This document shows positions 5,791 through 16,631 of a stretch of DNA of 64,000 nucleotides, piece after piece. Within the stretch, counting starts at the first letter, position 1; every line of letters starts with the position of its first letter. Made by a program: the position numbers and the translations under genes. The stretch is taken from IMG/VR virus record IMGVR_UViG_3300031669_000001, positions 1 through 64,000 of that record; one strand, written 5' to 3'. Under the pieces are notes generated by a model, which saw only the letters and a list, made by a program, of their open reading frames with translations, was not told the origin of the DNA and did not search any database.

Positions 5791-6051
5791 TTAAACAAAC
5801 AGCTTCAATTGTTCAGAAAAACGATATGTTTCTGTCACAATCATTAAGTCGGCAGCTTTTGGAATACTAAAGTGTTTCCCTATTGGCAACCCAAAATGCT
5901 TAGTCCAAATGTCTCCGATGGCTTGATAGAGTTCTGGGTACTCGCTACGGAGAACAGACCCACCATCTGCAGGAATGTATTTCAAGTCTCTGGGAAAGTA
6001 AAGTGCAAACTCCTTTGGAAATAGGATTCCAGCCACTGGAAGAAACATCAT
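5791..6051 (-). CDS. Small protein with phage tail-collar-like motif
   Basis: YIPADGGSVLRSEYPELYQAIG resembles the collar-domain consensus. Confidence 0.5.
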   Translation of the reverse strand: MMFLPVAGILFPKEFALYFPRDLKYIPADGGSVLRSEYPELYQAIGDIWTKHFGLPIGKHFSIPKAADLMIVTETYRFSEQLKLFV

Positions 6052-6365
6052 AGCTTTCTAGCCAACTTTTCAGAGGCTTCAACAGCCTTCGCGTGAGAGC
6101 TGTATATTTTCTTGTAAAGATCTTCTGGCGCAAATCCAGGTGCAGCTTCTCCAGTCGAGTGGAAAAGCTCAGCTAACTGATGATGGATGGTGCACAGCGT
6201 GATGCCGTTTTCCTTAACGTATCCACCGTTAGGCATCTCATTTCGATCAGTGATGTGATGAGCGTCAAGGTCTGTTGTGATGTTACAGAAGCGACACTTG
6301 TGGCCGTCTCGCTTGAACACCGCGATCCTGAATGCATCTCTAACTGCTTTCTTCTTGCTACTCAT
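6048..6365 (-). CDS. HNH endonuclease
   Basis: VFKRDGHKCRFC...AHHI...NGITLCTIHH. Confidence 0.85.
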   Translation of the reverse strand: MSSKKKAVRDAFRIAVFKRDGHKCRFCNITTDLDAHHITDRNEMPNGGYVKENGITLCTIHHQLAELFHSTGEAAPGFAPEDLYKKIYSSHAKAVEASEKLARKL

Positions 6366-6511: not shown

Positions 6512-6835
6512 TCAAGCTTGTTCATATTTCACAACTCCATGTTTATCTTCAGCCTTAACAACTTGACCGTAGATGATCCTTGTCCAGCCGTTGTCATACC
6601 CATGATTGTTGCTGATGAGGTAACGATCTCCATCTTTCTTCGTGATCTTGTGAGCGTCTATGTAACGACCATTCACCTTACAAAAGACGATATCGTCTAT
6701 CTCGTAAACTTCTTTGCGCTCATACTCACACGTCACCGGGTTAGGTAGGATAGGCTTCATTGAGTTTCCAGCGCACTTCATCCTGCCCTTACCAGTCTCT
6801 TCAAGAGATCTTTTTAGGTTCTCGTACTTGTTCAC
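6512..6835 (-). CDS. Peptidase S24/S26-like protein
   Basis: GNSMKPIL, DIVFCKV...AHKI, D/N-N motif. Confidence 0.6.
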   Translation of the reverse strand: MNKYENLKRSLEETGKGRMKCAGNSMKPILPNPVTCEYERKEVYEIDDIVFCKVNGRYIDAHKITKKDGDRYLISNNHGYDNGWTRIIYGQVVKAEDKHGVVKYEQA

Positions 6836-7119
6836 TCGATGATTCCTCGCTTCAAAATTTCTTTAGCCTTGTTACAAAGTTCCGGTTGAATGTACCACAG
6901 AGCTTTCGTCTCTATGATCTTTGTTAGATAACCAACTTTTGATCTCCAGGCTGCAGGTAACGTGTAGAACGCGGAAGATCCTACCAAGTGTCTTCGACCC
7001 CTGTGGATAGCCCACGTCCACTTCCTATCTCCGTTAGGTGAAAGAACTTCTACGTCAACTTCCTTTATCTTCCTACAAGGATGCAACGCTGATATGAGGT
7101 ACATTTTCATTTGGTTCAC
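6832..7119 (-). CDS. Hypothetical protein
   Basis: ATGA overlap. Confidence 0.55.
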   Translation of the reverse strand: MNQMKMYLISALHPCRKIKEVDVEVLSPNGDRKWTWAIHRGRRHLVGSSAFYTLPAAWRSKVGYLTKIIETKALWYIQPELCNKAKEILKRGIIE

Positions 7120-8192
7120 ACGTTAAAGAATGCTGACACGATCGCCTGATTTGCGTTGACAAAATGCCACGCACCATAGAACATCAGACCTATGACACCG
7201 AGCTTAATTCCGAGGGCTATCGCACCATCGGTTTTGATCTCGACAATCTTGTCAGCGATGAAGAAGATGATGAAAGCTCCGACCATCGTAGTCAGTTCCC
7301 TGATACCGTAGATCGCGGCTGTTGTACCAAAGCCGATGAACACGACTGGTGTGATGACATTCATCAGAGCGTAATTTGCTCTGTCGTAGTAGCGACTTGA
7401 CAGGATGAGCAGTCCTACGAATCCTGCAAGACTACCTAACCAAAACGCGCCAGATTGAAACAAGTCAATGATAGGATAATGAATTCCAACTGCTCGATAC
7501 ACGGTGAACAGAATAAGTATGATCACGCTAGCAGATGTTCCACGATAGATAGAATCTTTATCATCGTAACCAAAGGCGTAACAAAGCGGAGTTACGACGA
7601 CTGAGAATCCTAACAGCGAGATGACAGCGGCCATCGTTAAAAAGCCTATCGAAGGCGCCATGAAGACTATAGCGAGAGCACCCCAAACGACAGTCAGAAT
7701 CGTTGAAAAGCGCGTCATGTTAGGTTTGAGTTTACGAACGTGTGCGCTGAAGGAGATAGCACCTGGTATCAGCAGCGATCCAATGATGAGAGCCCATGAT
7801 GAAAAATCGTCTGTTGGACCATGGCCGTGCATCGTATAATATGCCTTAACTATGAGACCCACAGTAAGCACCCACAAGCCCACCTCGATGAATGCAGTTT
7901 GTTCTAGCAAAGCCGCAACGATTCCTTTGAAAATGAGCAAGATCGCAGACGTAAGCAACACTACACCGATCACCCACAAGAAATTTTCAAGACTCACGTA
8001 GGCTGCGGCCTTCTGCAGCGTTGTGAGGCTGGGACATGCAGTATCAGCCAACGCTATCGCCGGCATCAACATCAAACTTGCTAATAATTTTTTCATGATT
8101 TTCCTTTTATTTCCTGAATTGGATAAATTACTCCATAGTTTCCACCGGTCTTCTTGCAGACCACCCACTTGAATTGAACTGGGTGACAGCAT
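7116..8192 (-). CDS. Multi-pass membrane protein (likely start 8096, MKKLLAS)
   Basis: Signal-like N-terminus and about 9-10 hydrophobic segments. Confidence 0.75.
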   Translation of the reverse strand: MLSPSSIQVGGLQEDRWKLWSNLSNSGNKRKIMKKLLASLMLMPAIALADTACPSLTTLQKAAAYVSLENFLWVIGVVLLTSAILLIFKGIVAALLEQTAFIEVGLWVLTVGLIVKAYYTMHGHGPTDDFSSWALIIGSLLIPGAISFSAHVRKLKPNMTRFSTILTVVWGALAIVFMAPSIGFLTMAAVISLLGFSVVVTPLCYAFGYDDKDSIYRGTSASVIILILFTVYRAVGIHYPIIDLFQSGAFWLGSLAGFVGLLILSSRYYDRANYALMNVITPVVFIGFGTTAAIYGIRELTTMVGAFIIFFIADKIVEIKTDGAIALGIKLGVIGLMFYGAWHFVNANQAIVSAFFNV

Positions 8193-8235: not shown

Positions 8236-9111
8236 TCATATCTCGAACACCTTATGCTTTACAAAATGTTGTGATTCAAACTCTTGACTCTTGTAGCCGA
8301 CGCAGTTGTTTACCAACAACGTTTCACCCACCAAAGTTTCCTTCTGATAGTGAGTGTGACCGTAGCACCACATCTTGATGTGTGGATTGTCCAAGATCAA
8401 GTCGCTCAGGTCGCTGTGATAGTAACCGTTACCTGCAGTGTTTGTAGCAAACATTGGGTTGCTCAAGCCTGGCATAGGCAAGTGATGAGTGATCACCACT
8501 ATCTTCTTGTCTTTGTTCTGCTCAATGATGATCTTCAGGTAATCACGATGCTTCATGAAAGTTTGCACCCACTTCTCACTCGTGAACCGGCTCCAACCCA
8601 TTTGAGAGTAGCTGTTAGTTTTTAGATCCAAGCTTTTCAAACCTGTATCAAATGCTATCTTGCCATCGTAGCGCATGTAACCCGGCATGTTGTACATCGT
8701 CAACGGATCAAACTTGTTCATGTCAGTCCACAACGTGCAACCAACGAACAACACATCTTCGTCAATCACCACGTCGCAGTCAAGAACCTTGACGTTCATG
8801 ATTCCTAGGTCAGCCAGCATGTTGTTGCACTTCTGACCGCCCTTCACGATAGACAGATACTTTTCAGTAGGCCAGTAGTCATGGTTACCGAGAACAATTA
8901 ACACTCGCTTGAAGTGCTGCGCGACGTTGCTGATCCAGGAATCCTCTGCGTGCATGATGAAGTGAGTACCAATCCACAGATCGCCAGCAAGAATCAGAGT
9001 AGTCTCTGCATCGTCAGGCATCTTCGGCGGGTACCACATGACATCGCGTGCCTCGTAGTGGTCTAAGTGCATGTCGGAATAAACTCGAATCTTCTTCATA
9101 GGTCTGTTCAT
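8236..9111 (-). CDS. Calcineurin-like metallophosphoesterase
   Basis: SDMH, AGD, GNHDY, THH, GHTH motifs; ATGA overlap with PurA-like gene. Confidence 0.9.
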   Translation of the reverse strand: MNRPMKKIRVYSDMHLDHYEARDVMWYPPKMPDDAETTLILAGDLWIGTHFIMHAEDSWISNVAQHFKRVLIVLGNHDYWPTEKYLSIVKGGQKCNNMLADLGIMNVKVLDCDVVIDEDVLFVGCTLWTDMNKFDPLTMYNMPGYMRYDGKIAFDTGLKSLDLKTNSYSQMGWSRFTSEKWVQTFMKHRDYLKIIIEQNKDKKIVVITHHLPMPGLSNPMFATNTAGNGYYHSDLSDLILDNPHIKMWCYGHTHYQKETLVGETLLVNNCVGYKSQEFESQHFVKHKVFEI

Positions 9112-10367
9112 AAGGTAAATCTTTCCTTGATATTGTCTCTTGTAGGCCCACGGCTTTCCAACACGTAAGGTAATCCAATTTCACGAGCAAGTGAAACTGA
9201 GAAGTTATCCTTTGACGCACGCTTACGCTTTCCATTTGAAATGTAACGACCTACGTCGTCGAGATGATCAACGCAAGTAACGGCTAGCTTTGGGTTTACA
9301 TTGAAGCTAGAACCAAACACAGAATCTTTCAGATCAACAGCGATGCGATGACGTAGTTCATCGACATCCAAGTTACCATAACGGAACTTTCCTTGGAACT
9401 CATTTGTAAAGTTCGTAGTTTCCTTGATTCCTTTGTAAGGCTTTTCCTTCAACTCGTTTTCCATTGGACCAGCGCCGTGACGCGTCAAGTAGGCTCTAGT
9501 TACGTAGTAGACGTCGATCGCGTTGATTCCAGCTTCCTTGCAGATTTCTCTAACGTTTGTCAGACCGGTGAAGGACTTAGTTACGTGAGGGTGATGACCA
9601 TTCACTTGATCTAGACCGAGACCTTGACCGCCTTCAAATATCAACGAGTCATGCTTGCTCAAATTTTTTGTGTGCGTGATGGATATTGACTTTCCGAAGA
9701 GAATGATGTCTTCTAGGAACTTCCAGATCAAATTATCGTCCATCACCCGCTTCAGCATTTCATGAGTGTAGGGAATTCCGAGTTGTTGTAACCGCAGTGG
9801 AACCCACTCTTTGCGAATCAACTGTAATTTGTAGTGAAGCTCATCAGTTTTATCGTAGATTGAGTTGTAGTAAACGTCATCTGCATTCAGCTTGAAGATT
9901 GATTTCAGGTCAAATAGCTTGCCATCATTCGCAGACACCACTTCACAATTATTTCGATCGATGGTGTCTGTGACACCTAGACCGCAACTTCCATGTTTGA
10001 AATGTTTCTCGCGATACTCATTGACCATCATGTCGTATGGTGTAGACACCATCACTCTTGGATCAACGAACATCTTTGGAATCTTAACACCGGCGCTCTC
10101 AAGAACTGTGCGTTCTTTGAGGTAGATCATCGGGTTAGCGACGAAGTACTTGCTCAGGAATGTATCGGCACCATGAAACGTTCCCGATCCAAAGTGACTG
10201 AAGACGTGTCGATGACCGCCTGGTGTTACCACTGTGTGACCAGCCTGGGCACCACCATTGAATCGAACAACCAGCTTAGATTTTTCTCGATGTACAAGAT
10301 AGTCAGTGATGAGACCTTTACCCTCGTCACCATAGTTGGCGCCTATTACTACGTGTACGTTGCTCAT
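9108..10367 (-). CDS. purA: Divergent adenylosuccinate synthetase (PurA)-like ligase
   Basis: GANYGDEGKG, GGAQAGHT, EGGQG, TRHGAGP, SRGP; aspartate loop and TKLD motif diverged. Confidence 0.85.
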   Translation of the reverse strand: MSNVHVVIGANYGDEGKGLITDYLVHREKSKLVVRFNGGAQAGHTVVTPGGHRHVFSHFGSGTFHGADTFLSKYFVANPMIYLKERTVLESAGVKIPKMFVDPRVMVSTPYDMMVNEYREKHFKHGSCGLGVTDTIDRNNCEVVSANDGKLFDLKSIFKLNADDVYYNSIYDKTDELHYKLQLIRKEWVPLRLQQLGIPYTHEMLKRVMDDNLIWKFLEDIILFGKSISITHTKNLSKHDSLIFEGGQGLGLDQVNGHHPHVTKSFTGLTNVREICKEAGINAIDVYYVTRAYLTRHGAGPMENELKEKPYKGIKETTNFTNEFQGKFRYGNLDVDELRHRIAVDLKDSVFGSSFNVNPKLAVTCVDHLDDVGRYISNGKRKRASKDNFSVSLAREIGLPYVLESRGPTRDNIKERFTL

Positions 10368-10552
10368 TTTATCGTCTTCAAAAAGCCTGTTAGCAGGCGT
10401 TCATTGTCATAAGTTCGAGTTGACTGTTTGCGCTTTGGCTTCGCTGCTTCAGCCATCGCTTGCTTTTTCTTCGAACACGCATCATGATTGCCTTTTCGCC
10501 GAGAACGATGGCAAATTTCGCAGATATTTAGATTGTTCGAGTTGAATTGCAT
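10364..10552 (-). CDS. Small basic early protein with CxxC
   Basis: First ORF after early promoter; CEIC...H..C. Confidence 0.55.
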   Translation of the reverse strand: MQFNSNNLNICEICHRSRRKGNHDACSKKKQAMAEAAKPKRKQSTRTYDNERLLTGFLKTIK

Positions 10553-10581: not shown

Positions 10582-10611
10582 ATTTTATCACAATATGAAT
10601 AAAAAGTAAAC
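10582..10611 (-). promoter_or_regulatory. T4-early-like promoter
   Basis: GTTTAC-18-TAAAAT. Confidence 0.75.
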
Positions 10612-10621
10612 ACTTAAATGA

Positions 10622-10655
10622 AAAAAGAGCAAGAATTTCCATCCTTGCTCTTTTT
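10622..10655. terminator. Intrinsic terminator after vWA gene
   Basis: AAAAAGAGCAAG...CTTGCTCTTTTT inverted repeat with T-tracts on both strands. Confidence 0.8.
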
Positions 10656-10670
10656 GATAGGTGCTACGAT

Positions 10671-11633
10671 TTAAACAGAGGCTTTTGCTTTGACTTTCTT
10701 CTTGTCGAAGCGAACTACTCCGCCGCGCTTCACTGCAACGTCTGTAGAGCTCGACATGCCAGCGACTGCTTTCGCTACCACGACCGAGGTATCTCCAGAC
10801 CAGGTAGCTGCAACCACTGCAGCCGATGATCCTTCGACCACTTGAATCGCCGATACGATCACTTCAGACAGCTTGGTATAATCTGCCAGAGGCAGAACGC
10901 GTTCAGCTCCGATCAAGTTGTTCCAGGATTTGATGACGGAATCTCTTCCATACATACAACCATTTCCTTGTTCAATCACAACGTGGAAGATGTGGTACAT
11001 CTTCGAAGCCATCGCGAACAGTTCCTTCGAGCTGATGAAATCAGGAACGTCATCACCGATGAACCTTTTGATCTGTGCAGGATTCAGACCAGGCGGTGCA
11101 GGTTCATCGCCTACTGTGAACAGATAACCCTTCTTGCCGCGCTTTTCGAAGCAATCGATAGAAGTGTGTTGAGCTGCGAAGTACCATGGCAGATCATACG
11201 ATTCGAAGTTATTGCCGCCGCCACGACCTTCCAAGAAGATGTCTGTCAGCTGTTCGATGATTCGATTGTCTGCCTCAAACTGAGACACCTGCAGCGGGTA
11301 ATTGTCACAGTAAGCATCACCATTGGCCATGAACATCAGGTGTGGATCAGATACAGGTTTGCGATCCAGAATTTCATTGAACAGAACACCCAGGCCTTCG
11401 CGAGCGATACTTTCAGCGATCATACCCATGGATCCAGTAACGTCCAAGGTGACGATGATGGCTGTAGAATTTGGATTGTCAACTGAATCGCGAGATTCAC
11501 GGACTGCAACGTTCAACGGGCTCAGGTGATCTTTGGCTGCGCTTTTGGTTGCAAAAATTTTATCGGCGGACTTACCGACGGTGCTTCTAGAGTATGAGTC
11601 CCAGTCCTTGGAACTCCAGCTGCCTCCACCCAT
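10671..11633 (-). CDS. von Willebrand factor A (vWA) domain protein
   Basis: MIDAS DVTGSM, GDA..D, EG.GGGN..ESY, TVGDE. Confidence 0.8.
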   Translation of the reverse strand: MGGGSWSSKDWDSYSRSTVGKSADKIFATKSAAKDHLSPLNVAVRESRDSVDNPNSTAIIVTLDVTGSMGMIAESIAREGLGVLFNEILDRKPVSDPHLMFMANGDAYCDNYPLQVSQFEADNRIIEQLTDIFLEGRGGGNNFESYDLPWYFAAQHTSIDCFEKRGKKGYLFTVGDEPAPPGLNPAQIKRFIGDDVPDFISSKELFAMASKMYHIFHVVIEQGNGCMYGRDSVIKSWNNLIGAERVLPLADYTKLSEVIVSAIQVVEGSSAAVVAATWSGDTSVVVAKAVAGMSSSTDVAVKRGGVVRFDKKKVKAKASV

Positions 11634-11634
11634 T

Positions 11635-11982
11635 TTAGTTCTCCTTTTTAAAGATAAAGTATGATGATTCTGTTTCGTAATAAGGTTGTTTTAAATACTG
11701 CACTTTCCAACCTGCCGTTTCAAAGAGTGGTTCAACGTCGAGCCAACCTTTGTTGTATGCATCTACATCTCCAAACTCTTCCTTATGAGCTTCAATGTAA
11801 GATTGAATCTGTTTGTAGACAGTCGTCTGTTTCACCTCGGCGTAATTGCTAGTTGAATTAAAATTCTTGGCGATTTCCGCGTTGAAGATTCCAATTACAA
11901 AGTATGGAATCTTCTGAGCCTTTTCCAACTTAATCTGACGCTTAAAGCTCAGTACTTCATCAGGTCCTATCGGTTCCATCAT
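11635..11982 (-). CDS. Hypothetical protein
   Basis: Operon packing between J-domain and vWA genes. Confidence 0.65.
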   Translation of the reverse strand: MMEPIGPDEVLSFKRQIKLEKAQKIPYFVIGIFNAEIAKNFNSTSNYAEVKQTTVYKQIQSYIEAHKEEFGDVDAYNKGWLDVEPLFETAGWKVQYLKQPYYETESSYFIFKKEN

Positions 11983-13070
11983 TTGCTCCCATAAAGATCA
12001 TCTGCGGTCAACTTCAAATCCACGAACCTCCGAGGACCAAAGCTGTCTATTACTGTCTTGGTGTGCCAAGTCTTGTACTCTTCGTAGGCATCACCTTTGC
12101 TCATAGTTCTCAACCAACTTATCAGTTGAGGTGGAATGCTCTTGTTCATGAGCAGCTTTGAGCCTACGATGTCACCAAGTAACTGTCTAGCGGTAGCGTG
12201 AAGAAGTTCCAGATCGATTTTTGGATCAGCTTTTTGAGCATCCAGAACATCTTCTGGTGAAAATTCTACAGCTACTCCAGGTAACGCGTCAAGCGGTTTC
12301 CCTATCTCTCGAGCATACCACCAACCACCAAGCAGGTGAACAGTGTGTTCTCCTGGTGAGATCAGACAGGAATCTACTGTGATTCCAGCGTGCATCAAAT
12401 TTGCATACTTTAGATAGCAGCAGATGCTATACAGACGGCTGATCATCCAAGCAACATGCTTTGGATCAACCTCGCCGTTGAAGTGAGAGAGAACATCGCT
12501 CATCAACAATTGGTCAGGAGTCTTCTTGATCAGCATCACCAAGCGCTCGTCAGTGACCAACTCAGAATGAATTTCAGGCAACAGCTTCTTTACCTCATTC
12601 TTCATCTTGTCATCTGCAAACTTGAAGTTCTTGATGATGCGTTGAGCGTTCTTGTAGAGGTCTTCATTGTCCTTGTACAGAGAGTACGCAACGACGGTAT
12701 CACCGACGTAGATGTCTCCTAGCTCGAATGCTCTGGTGGCTTTGTACTTCAATTTGAATTTTTTGCCATCCACAGTTTTGAATACAATGACTCCTGGAGT
12801 GACCCAGGTGTCTGTGGCGAGTCTGAAGACGGCGAGATTATAGACTACATTAACGTGCGCCATAACGTCTTCATCGACCATTGGGTTCTGATCGGGGTGC
12901 CAGGCGGAGACGAGTTTACGATACTCTACCTTGGCGACTTCAGTGTCGGCGGTGAACAATTGTTCAGGTTGGTCTACAGGGATGGCTAAGATGTCATCGG
13001 CTGTGAGCGTTGAGATGTCTTTCATCACTTCCTCACTTTGTAAAGGCTCTTGAAGAAACTCCTTCTTCAA
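11979..13070 (-). CDS. J-domain plus degenerate protein-kinase-like fold protein (likely start 13025)
   Basis: YRKLVSAWHPDQN J-domain motif; kinase C-lobe-like region with HAG in place of HRD and GGW in place of DFG. Confidence 0.7.
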   Translation of the reverse strand: MKKEFLQEPLQSEEVMKDISTLTADDILAIPVDQPEQLFTADTEVAKVEYRKLVSAWHPDQNPMVDEDVMAHVNVVYNLAVFRLATDTWVTPGVIVFKTVDGKKFKLKYKATRAFELGDIYVGDTVVAYSLYKDNEDLYKNAQRIIKNFKFADDKMKNEVKKLLPEIHSELVTDERLVMLIKKTPDQLLMSDVLSHFNGEVDPKHVAWMISRLYSICCYLKYANLMHAGITVDSCLISPGEHTVHLLGGWWYAREIGKPLDALPGVAVEFSPEDVLDAQKADPKIDLELLHATARQLLGDIVGSKLLMNKSIPPQLISWLRTMSKGDAYEEYKTWHTKTVIDSFGPRRFVDLKLTADDLYGSK

Positions 13071-15194: not shown

Positions 15195-16631
15195 CTATTT
15201 GTCATCCCTCAGGCAGGTAAAGAATGGGAAACGCAGAGCGTAGGTGTCAGAGTTTTCAGCCAGGGATAGTTCTTGACATTCGATAGTGCAGGTCTCGCCG
15301 ATAAACTTGTCTTGGTTGTTCCAAGCGTAGGTGCGGAAGAACTCATCGTTAGATACTCCGCTTGCCAGGATAGCTGCGATGTCGATCTTGTTGGCTTTTG
15401 CGAACTTCGCCAACCAAGCTTTGTAGTTCTTGTGGCTGACCTTGATGCCGCCGCAACGAGACTTGATCTTGTTACCATTTTCGTCCTTGCCTTCAACGAA
15501 GAAGCCACCGAGACGGCCTTCATTCTTGGTACCGGCGCGGCCTTCGAAGCAACCAACGATCTTGACGTCCACGTCGATGACAGGCTTCCACTTCGACCAA
15601 GTAGCTGTACGCTTCTTGTTGTTCCATTCATACTTGCCGCTGAGGTACTTGATGATCAGACCTTCATCTTGACCAGCGATACCGAGCTCAGTAACTTCGG
15701 CGTAGAATTCTTGGGCTTCTGCCAAGTTTTTCAAGATGCGATACTTTGACTTCACGATTGTGGTCAGGTTGAGCTTCTTGATTACCTTTTCAAGATCACC
15801 AGATCGTGCATATTGAGGCTTAGGGCAGCTTTGAGCTTCCCATTCAGTGAGAGTCATCGTGTCGAATACGTAGAAGCGCATTCCAGATTTGTCACCTTTG
15901 GAACCTTTTGCTTTCGCTGTAGCAGACATTCCACCATCAGCCAAAGCTTCACCATCGACGATGATAGGTTGACCAACTTCTTGTTCCATCTTGATGAGTT
16001 CATCATCGAACAAACCATTCCATTGATCTGCAGATTTGCCGGAGCGAGACAGGTACTCGACTTCACCGTTCTGAACCTTTGCAACCAAGCGCATACCGTC
16101 ATATTTGACTTCGCCCATGCACGGGAATTCCCAACGATATTTTGGGTAAACGATTTCACCCTTTGCGTTCTTACGATGCTCGATCTTTTCGCAGAGCATC
16201 AACTCGAAGCCAGGAATCTTCAACTGAGGGTAAACTTTTTCGAAGGTGTTGGTGTTACCACCGCACTTCAGGTCTTTCAGGAGGACACGTTCGAGGACGG
16301 AAGCAGTACGTTCATCGTACAGTCCGAGGACGGCAGTTACTGCATTCTTTGCAGCGTTGCCAGTCAGAACTCGATCATTAAGTTGGTCTAGGAGTTCGAA
16401 GAAGAGCTTGAAAGAACCATTGCGTCCATCCAAGTTGCCGAATGCCTGTGGTTGTTCCCACTTGCGAATACCAAAGACACGATAAGGATTTTCAGTTTCC
16501 AGCAACAGACGAACACCGTCTGCATCCAGGCCGGAAAGTGCTTCGAATTTTTCTTTCTTCGTTGAAATCTTTTCAGCTGTAAGAATTGCATCTGCGAAGG
16601 ACTTTGCCATTGATAATCTCCTGTTTTCCAA
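15195..16631 (-). CDS. ATP-dependent DNA ligase (likely start 16610)
   Basis: EVKYDGMR, SRSG, DGE, FDT, EGLIIK, KWKP, OB domain LRFP. Confidence 0.95.
   Translation of the reverse strand: MENRRLSMAKSFADAILTAEKISTKKEKFEALSGLDADGVRLLLETENPYRVFGIRKWEQPQAFGNLDGRNGSFKLFFELLDQLNDRVLTGNAAKNAVTAVLGLYDERTASVLERVLLKDLKCGGNTNTFEKVYPQLKIPGFELMLCEKIEHRKNAKGEIVYPKYRWEFPCMGEVKYDGMRLVAKVQNGEVEYLSRSGKSADQWNGLFDDELIKMEQEVGQPIIVDGEALADGGMSATAKAKGSKGDKSGMRFYVFDTMTLTEWEAQSCPKPQYARSGDLEKVIKKLNLTTIVKSKYRILKNLAEAQEFYAEVTELGIAGQDEGLIIKYLSGKYEWNNKKRTATWSKWKPVIDVDVKIVGCFEGRAGTKNEGRLGGFFVEGKDENGNKIKSRCGGIKVSHKNYKAWLAKFAKANKIDIAAILASGVSNDEFFRTYAWNNQDKFIGETCTIECQELSLAENSDTYALRFPFFTCLRDDK

Follow-up and report, generated by a model that had tools for sequence, protein, structure and literature searches.

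A PurA-like ligase of a third superfamily clade and its constant, predicted vWA-fold partner in a jumbo phage genome

The first 64 kb of the IMG/VR virus record IMGVR_UViG_3300031669_000001 (positions 1 to 64,000, hereafter the window) contain the gene of a PurA-like ligase, a divergent member of the adenylosuccinate synthetase superfamily. The gene lies downstream of those for a predicted vWA-fold protein and a J-domain/kinase-fold protein, and its stop overlaps the start of a metallophosphoesterase gene (Table 1). The record comprises 345,069 base pairs (bp) with direct terminal repeats and is therefore regarded as a jumbo phage. Nearly all genes around the PurA-like locus lie on the minus strand, and no near-identical DNA for the locus was found among the GenBank phages.

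The ligase matches the Pfam family PF00709 (E 1.8e-41; residues 6–346 against profile positions 1–317 of 416) and is assigned to phrog_1211, in line with the original prediction, made from the sequence alone, of a PurA-fold gene that keeps the catalytic Asp and His. Its identity is 25% to E. coli PurA and 19% to the PurZ proteins of phiVC8 and of S-2L. The scores lie below the cut-offs of both PurA equivalog models (TIGR00184, 110.2 bits against 395.55; NF002223, 119.4 bits against 402), as well as that of the PurZ model NF038379 (57.2 bits against 300). Among the solved structures, the best PurA entries are matched at about 1e-19 to 1e-22, and 7VF6, which is a PurZ0 (PMC12884076), only at E 8e-4. 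The phylogeny that had been suggested as a check was run as a maximum-likelihood tree of 6 canonical PurA, 3 PurZ, 2 PurZ0, and 23 proteins related to the window ligase. Three cleanly separate groups result, with supports of 99/98 for the PurA-like proteins, 100/99 for PurA, and 100/99 for PurZ together with PurZ0. Furthermore, five bacterial genomes hold both a canonical PurA (581–639 bits) and a PurA-like relative (137–177 bits), so the family constitutes an extra paralog beside a full-scoring PurA. The ligase is not PurZ, as the original prediction had maintained, and neither PurZ0 nor PurA, and belongs to a third, well-supported clade.

The lack of a PurB-like lyase, likewise predicted, extends to the whole genome, in which no match to Lyase_1 exists across 345,069 bp. 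HD (DatZ-type) and MazG domains also have no match in the genome; DutZ and DmtZ were not searched for. Two longer homologs of the ligase (586 and 477 residues) were inspected for fusion partners, and the PurA domain alone was seen. Public annotations name the relatives of the ligase adenylosuccinate synthase, and the gene is carried by approximately 200 Mycobacterium phage records. In a 2026 survey of viral PurA homologs in Nucleic Acids Research, 481 phage proteins were sorted into the PurA and PurZ groups, and the remaining homologs served only as the root, without discussion (PMC12884076).

The active site was mapped by aligning 171 family members to the numbering of E. coli PurA. In the ligase, all motifs quoted in the original prediction are present and align with the named E. 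coli PurA positions, including GDEGKG (residues 13–18), AGHT (42–45), GSCGLG (126–131), TNFTNEFQGKFR (318–329), and TCVD (364–367). Residues D14, K17, H44, and Q248 correspond to Asp13, Lys16, His41, and Gln224 of E. coli PurA and are 100% conserved across the family; Thr239 is kept and essentially invariant, and Asp333 and Ser414 are largely kept. In E. coli PurA, Asp13 presumably acts as the base and His41 as the acid, with Gln224 situated at the purine base, Thr239 at the 5'-phosphate, and Asp333 and Ser414 as the guanine contacts. Asp13, Lys16, His41, and Gln224 are taken here to serve the phosphorylation of the purine 6-oxo group that depends on guanosine triphosphate (GTP). The machinery for the GTP-driven activation of the purine 6-oxo group appears intact in the ligase, including the base-contacting Gln and one phosphate-contacting Thr.

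Compared with PurA, the aspartate loop, part of the phosphate site for inosine monophosphate (IMP), and the TKLD motif are replaced. Four residues, Thr300, Thr301, Arg303, and Arg305, are assumed to bind aspartate in E. coli PurA, and none of them is kept in the PurA-like family: Thr300 is replaced by an aromatic residue, Thr301 by Gln (100%), and Arg305 by Leu or Phe, and Arg303 is deleted. Further substitutions comprise Asn38 to Gln, Thr128 to Ser, Thr226 to Leu, and Val273 to His (each 100%), Thr129 to Cys and Gly298 to Asn (each 98%), Lys331 to Cys (96%), and Ser240 to Arg (91%; Lys in the window ligase). Arg131 gives way to a variable hydrophobic residue, and Arg143, which in PurA presumably contacts the IMP phosphate from the other subunit, is not conserved. 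Judged from these replacements, the aspartate pocket appears to be swapped for a different, strongly constrained pocket. The replaced aspartate-binding residues make a changed amine substrate, as originally proposed, a reasonable inference. The idea of a phage-specific rewiring analogous to that of PurZ fared less well, since the changed residues are the signature of a large family common to bacteria and phages and are near-invariant in its 171 aligned members.

The most constant feature of the genomic setting is the vWA-fold protein, which the original prediction overlooked together with the J-domain/kinase-fold protein upstream. In this phage, the vWA gene lies two genes upstream of the ligase, with a small open reading frame (ORF) of 62 codons in between. 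Two surveys define its distribution. For bacteria, one genome per species was scanned with an alignment of the vWA protein, at least 574 species matched, and the best 80 loci were analysed; for viruses, contigs were scanned with an alignment of the PurA-like protein, at least 547 contigs matched, and again the best 80 loci were analysed. The PurA-like gene is situated immediately downstream of the vWA gene in 77 of the 80 bacterial loci, the other three ending at a contig edge. Of the 80 viral loci, 79 have the vWA gene upstream of the PurA-like gene, including all 74 with sufficient upstream sequence. The PurA-like gene thus has an obligate genomic partner in the vWA gene. In unrelated bacterial chromosomes, the protein encoded directly upstream of the PurA-like genes is 53% identical to the vWA protein of the window. 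Three phages, Vibrio phage Va1 (48% identity), Rhizobium phage RHph_TM30 (41%), and Mycobacterium phage Catera (33%), encode counterparts of the vWA protein in the same pairing.

The vWA protein matches no Pfam family, the vWA models included, and a profile search against the PDB sequences gave no match. In the AlphaFold2 model (pLDDT 87.7), Foldseek recognises, with a probability of 1.00, the vWA domains of integrin I-like, Ku80, and anthrax-receptor proteins, and the AFDB matches are named VWFA. The metal site is the (near-)invariant D64-x-T-G-S68, and G175-D176-E177 is conserved as well. The model and these residues point to a vWA fold with a DxSxS-type metal site (MIDAS). The family is large: in a set of 1.84 billion representatives, its profile finds 879 clusters with E values of 1e-30 or lower. 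The N-terminus is strongly constrained; of 120 gene calls in the database, 113 begin with Met-Gly, and 137 of 141 vWA ORFs have MGxx[R/S][W/F] at one and the same position. In the case of Catera gp250 (L009:3671-4726), the annotated start lies 12 codons upstream of this family-wide Met-Gly and is probably too early. A homolog among the AFDB cluster matches, A0A2A4U119, has 526 residues, of which 1–277 align with the vWA partner at 31% identity, and is named U-box-containing; such a U-box would tie a vWA-partner homolog to the protein-conjugation machinery. In the related contig L014, the vWA and PurA-like genes are separated by an insertion, an HNH/NUMOD3 homing-endonuclease gene (L014:7303-7956) that runs on the opposite strand.

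The J-domain/kinase-fold gene is present in 60/80 bacterial and 26/80 viral loci. In an Acidobacteria operon, the vWA gene is preceded by a gene whose product shares 38% identity with the full-length window protein. Its Pfam DnaJ match remains below the cut-off (17 bits against 27.8); the J-domain tripeptide reads WHPDQNP in the window protein, and HPD is at least 90% conserved in 35–54 orthologs, which suggests a J-domain co-chaperone. The AlphaFold2 model (pLDDT 94) has a J-PKAc chimera as the top PDB match, followed by protein kinases. The canonical kinase Asp residues (HRD, DFG) are not conserved in the family; the window protein has Gly at the catalytic-loop position, where the consensus has Ala, and GGWW in place of DFG. 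The protein is probably a pseudokinase or an atypical enzyme. Its first listed start is a TTG at 13070; the orthologs and the protein-atlas record begin 15 codons downstream, at an ATG (13025) that is probably the true start. In phages without the J-domain/kinase-fold gene, two Met-/Gly-rich families of approximately 197 and 237 residues, without a Pfam match, are found directly upstream of the vWA gene (L153:8495-9088, L007:3252-3965, and 23 other viral loci), and these proteins may represent alternative third components.

The flanking genes point to the metabolism of nicotinamide adenine dinucleotide (NAD+) and ADP-ribose. In 32 of the 80 bacterial loci, a regulator of the NrtR family (Nudix and winged helix, PF21906) adjoins the operon, mostly in divergent orientation. 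NrtR regulators, according to work cited in PMC9503650, sense ADP-ribose and control NAD metabolism. Among the viral loci, 14 of 80 have NAMPT, NMNAT-Nudix, or NADAR genes flanking the module: NAMPT lies within 10 kb in 12 loci, often right beside the ligase, bifunctional NMNAT-Nudix within 10 kb in 8, and NADAR in 3 as detected by tblastn (7 of the 87 loci used for clustering). A few kilobases upstream of the module, the Rhizobium phage carries two further genes of this kind, one for a Nudix protein and one for a phosphoribosyltransferase-like protein. In Vibrio phage Va1, a NADAR-domain gene (L007:2233-2889) is located upstream of the vWA/PurA-like pair and an Rv2179c-like 3'-5' exoribonuclease gene (L007:6125-6769) downstream. 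The present phage contains, outside the window, NAMPT and bifunctional NMNAT-Nudix genes approximately 2 kb apart (284859-289416), which would form an NAD+ salvage pair of the KVP40 type, as well as a NADAR gene (186027-186476) and a Thg1-like gene (204042-204722).

Downstream of the ligase, the predicted overlap with the phosphoesterase was found as an ATGA at 9108-9111. The phosphoesterase scores 44.8 bits against PF00149 Metallophos (cut-off 21.5) and belongs to phrog_1649. Its translation contains all five metallophosphoesterase motifs (DMHLD, GDL, GNHD, ITHH, and GHTH), indicating by this family match and motif set a calcineurin-like metallophosphoesterase. The closest solved relatives by sequence are, weakly (E 0.001), nucleotide phosphodiesterases of the SMPDL3A type. 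The gene occurs in 0/80 bacterial loci and within 10 kb in 6/80 viral loci. It lies downstream of the ligase in the nearest relatives (contigs L013–L015), sometimes with one or two small genes between, and the synteny is also observed in the jumbo-phage contigs L110 and L111. The family is present in 126 GenBank phage records, from organisms mostly other than the carriers of the PurA-like gene. Kept in the nearest relatives and absent from nearly all other loci, the phosphoesterase is a lineage-specific accessory outside the conserved system; a local functional link with the ligase is possible.

Upstream of the ligase, a terminator-like hairpin lies at approximately 10620-10652, and after it, at 10582-10610, comes a sigma-70-like site whose -10 element is extended. 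For the early promoter that the original prediction assigned to the ligase gene, this site is a weak candidate: it precedes the 62-codon ORF and does not stand directly before the PurA-like gene, and the region contains no more promoter-like matches than chance would give (8 found against 10.9 expected from shuffled sequence). The 62-codon ORF overlaps the PurA-like start by an ATGA at 10364-10367; with a tblastn homolog in 1/80 viral and 0/80 bacterial loci, it is not conserved beyond close relatives. Homologs of the 115-codon ORF occur near the module in 5/80 viral loci and in L013.

Table 1. Features of the PurA-like locus in the window
Feature	Coordinates	Strand	Basis
Calcineurin-like metallophosphoesterase (predicted), 291 aa	8236..9111	-	PF00149, phrog_1649
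PurA-like ligase, 419 aa, third clade of the adenylosuccinate-synthetase superfamily	9108..10367	-	PF00709, residue map, tree
62-aa basic ORF with CxxC...HxxC pattern	10364..10552	-	ATGA overlap with PurA-like start
Terminator-like hairpin, then sigma-70-like promoter match	10582..10652	-	Between vWA gene and 62-aa ORF
MIDAS-type vWA-fold protein (predicted), 320 aa, invariant N-terminal Met-Gly	10671..11633	-	phrog_2971, AlphaFold2/Foldseek, adjacency
115-aa ORF between J-domain/kinase-fold and vWA genes	11635..11982	-	No Pfam, PHROG, or NCBIfam match
J-domain (HPD) and protein-kinase fold (predicted)	11979..13070	-	phrog_3043 'kinase', weak DnaJ Pfam, AlphaFold2

Several other accessory genes are located nearby, including those of an RNA ligase (PF09414, 4459-5142), an HNH endonuclease (6048-6365), a weak S24-peptidase-like ORF (6512-6835), and an ATP-dependent DNA ligase (15195-16631). 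The synteny of the RNA ligase and the DNA ligase with the module is kept in the related contigs L013 and L014. Among the GenBank phages, a DNA ligase of moderate similarity (38%) is found in Ralstonia phage RsoM2USA alone. Directly downstream of the phosphoesterase, an ORF of 358 codons (7116-8192) without a family match has several long hydrophobic stretches in its translation and probably encodes a membrane protein; a homolog lies near the module in 0 of the 160 loci.

The reading proposed here, held with a modest lean in its favour, is that the ligase of a conserved module activates a nucleotide and joins it to an amine other than aspartate with its vWA partner, within an NAD+/ADP-ribose network. 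The ligase would be the enzymatic subunit of a three-part module, in which the vWA protein is always present and the J-domain/kinase-fold protein often. With GTP, it would activate a 6-oxopurine-type nucleotide by phosphorylation, and the activated nucleotide would be coupled to the new amine, the ligase acting with, or on, the vWA partner. The J-domain protein would bring in the host DnaK/Hsp70, and the phosphoesterase would be an add-on that may trim the product or a by-product. The NrtR-type flanks in bacteria and the NAD-salvage and ADP-ribose-processing flanks in phages would make the module part of an NAD+/ADP-ribose network, and this phage would therefore carry it as a set of auxiliary genes that serve the nucleotide/NAD economy of its host during infection. 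Because aspartate no longer fits and the vWA neighbour is constant, the product is probably something other than an adenine precursor. The module is not a DNA-base modification pathway.

Within this general statement, a small-molecule amine and a protein amine are rated equally, each well above a GTP-dependent switch and something else, which are themselves rated alike. A specific form of the protein-amine version, speculative and rather improbable, takes as the co-substrate the alpha-amine of the near-invariant N-terminal Gly of the vWA partner, to which a purine nucleotide would be attached via N6, adding approximately 330 Da. If true, such an N6-linked vWA adduct would be a new type of protein-nucleotide conjugate, generated by an Hsp70-recruiting module under ADP-ribose-sensing regulators.

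Several points weigh against the proposed reading. The substrate, the amine, and the product of the ligase are all inferred, and the loss of Arg143 together with the changes at Asn38 and Thr129 suggests that the nucleotide may not be a simple 5'-monophosphate. A terminator-like hairpin stands between the vWA and ligase genes in this phage, and the complex prediction for the two proteins, with a score of 0.14 against a mark of 0.34, is evidence neither way. In addition, the NAMPT and NMNAT-Nudix genes are situated approximately 275 kb from the module along the record of this phage. The NAD link in phages is moderate (the 14 of 80 loci given above), and accessory genes cluster in large phages anyway. 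NrtR-family regulators also act on non-NAD pathways, such as arabinose use, according to work cited in PMC9503650.

Other explanations of the ligase differ in how they account for its pocket and its neighbours. That it is a divergent but genuine adenylosuccinate synthetase, raising the synthesis of adenosine monophosphate (AMP) during infection via the host PurB, would agree with its Pfam and PHROG families, its catalytic Asp, Lys, His, and Gln, and the public names of its relatives. Such an enzyme is nevertheless very unlikely: by substitution or deletion, the whole family has lost Thr300, Thr301, Arg303, and Arg305 of the aspartate and ribose site, the equivalog scores of 110–119 bits fall far below the cut-offs of 395–402, the tree places it in a separate clade, canonical PurA is kept alongside in bacteria, and AMP synthesis offers no role for the obligate vWA partner. 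A PurZ/PurZ0-type enzyme for 2-aminoadenine (Z) DNA is scarcely credible. The label arises because PHROG gives phrog_1211 the PurZ name, which the RefSeq phage records copy; the ligase has Asp, not Ser, at the PurZ-defining position, the PurZ model, the match to 7VF6, and the tree all separate it from that group, the genome contains no DatZ-type HD, MazG, or PurB gene, and the phages found by a PurZ query and by the ligase query share hardly any organisms. PurZ identity is already refuted by the sequence.

The functional coupling to the phosphoesterase in the original prediction, a two-enzyme pathway to a modified nucleotide or signal that would have evolved as PurZ did, is favoured by the ATGA translational coupling in this phage, the synteny in L013, L014, L015, L110, and L111, the full catalytic motifs of the phosphoesterase, and its nearest solved relatives among nucleotide phosphodiesterases. 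This pathway now seems unlikely, since none of the bacterial and only 6 of the 80 viral loci contain the phosphoesterase, in relatives it is parted from the ligase by small unrelated genes (one or two), its family lives mostly in organisms without the PurA-like gene, and ATGA overlaps are routine in dense phage genomes. The original interpretation holds as regards an enzyme that is not PurZ, not ordinary PurA, and changed in its amine, and finds no support in its link to the phosphoesterase. The PurA-like protein may also be imagined as having turned into a switch driven by GTP, or an assembly factor, that acts on the vWA/MIDAS protein much like the GTPases and AAA+ proteins with which vWA proteins work in chelatases, with no new nucleotide made. 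The vWA proteins often pair with nucleoside triphosphatases, for example in MoxR-vWA (PMC7824862), the P-loop and guanine contacts are kept, and a chaperone-recruiting J-domain protein is encoded in the same operon. This alternative is considered doubtful, because the purine-chemistry residues Asp13, His41, Gln224, and Thr239 are invariant and an equally invariant new pocket takes the place of the aspartate site, which argues for a second and a third substrate over bare GTP hydrolysis.

The PurA paralogs have produced one surprise before, PurZ and Z-DNA, and the third clade is at least as widespread, with PurA-like relatives in at least 547 viral contigs and vWA-partner relatives in at least 574 bacterial species. 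Should the NAD+/ADP-ribose link hold, the module could be a novel component of NAD homeostasis or of the way in which phages respond to immunity that depletes NAD; an amine supplied by a protein would represent new chemistry. The module is small and found in culturable bacteria (Massilia, Clostridium drakei, Acetobacter malorum, and Paracoccus homiensis), and also in phages grown on culturable hosts (Mycobacterium phage Catera, its cluster C relatives, and Vibrio phage Va1), so the question is directly testable.

The family itself is already visible in annotations, as the 'PurA-like adenylosuccinate synthetase' of the cluster C mycobacteriophages. A literature search covering the ligase with vWA proteins, NrtR, jumbo phages, mycobacteriophages, and anti-defence found no description of the module, nor an account of the distinct active site, the obligate vWA partner, the J-domain/kinase-fold component, or the NrtR/NAD context. 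The PADLOC defence models match none of the seven module proteins.

Among the known systems, E. coli PurA (PDB 1ADE and related entries) shares with the ligase the PF00709 fold and superfamily, the GDEGKG P-loop, the GHT His, Gln224, Thr239, Asp333, and Ser414. Compared with PurA, the ligase lacks an insertion of approximately 60 residues in the C-terminal part, its GATTGRRR loop is replaced and Arg303 deleted, Arg143 is unconserved, a vWA protein accompanies it throughout, and in bacteria it coexists with true PurA. PurZ and PurZ0 (phiVC8, S-2L, and Gordonia phage Ghobes) resemble it as phage PurA paralogs with an altered substrate use and as members of phrog_1211. However, PurZ of phiVC8 and S-2L has Ser where the ligase has Asp. 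This Ser is found in 100% of the phage PurZ sequences, and PurZ still uses aspartate and depends on PurB, DatZ, and MazZ or DutZ/DmtZ (PMC12884076).

The NrtR-regulated systems with vWA chaperones and phosphatases, which are predicted to handle ADP-ribose adducts (Viruses 2022, PMC9503650), show a similar arrangement, including a Nudix-wHTH regulator beside a vWA operon, an occasional calcineurin-like phosphatase, and conflict-prone contexts. Those systems centre on an ADP-ribosylglycohydrolase, whereas none is seen at the present module, and neither a PurA-like ligase nor a J-domain/kinase-fold protein is described there. A further likeness exists in the Mycobacterium cluster C phages (Catera gp252 and the Bxz1 relatives), whose PurA-like protein falls in the same clade as the window ligase. 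The identity is only 32–33%, with a long branch in the tree, and Catera has no phosphoesterase downstream; the gene order matches, with the kinase-like gp249, the vWA-like gp250, the small gp251, and the PurA-like gp252.

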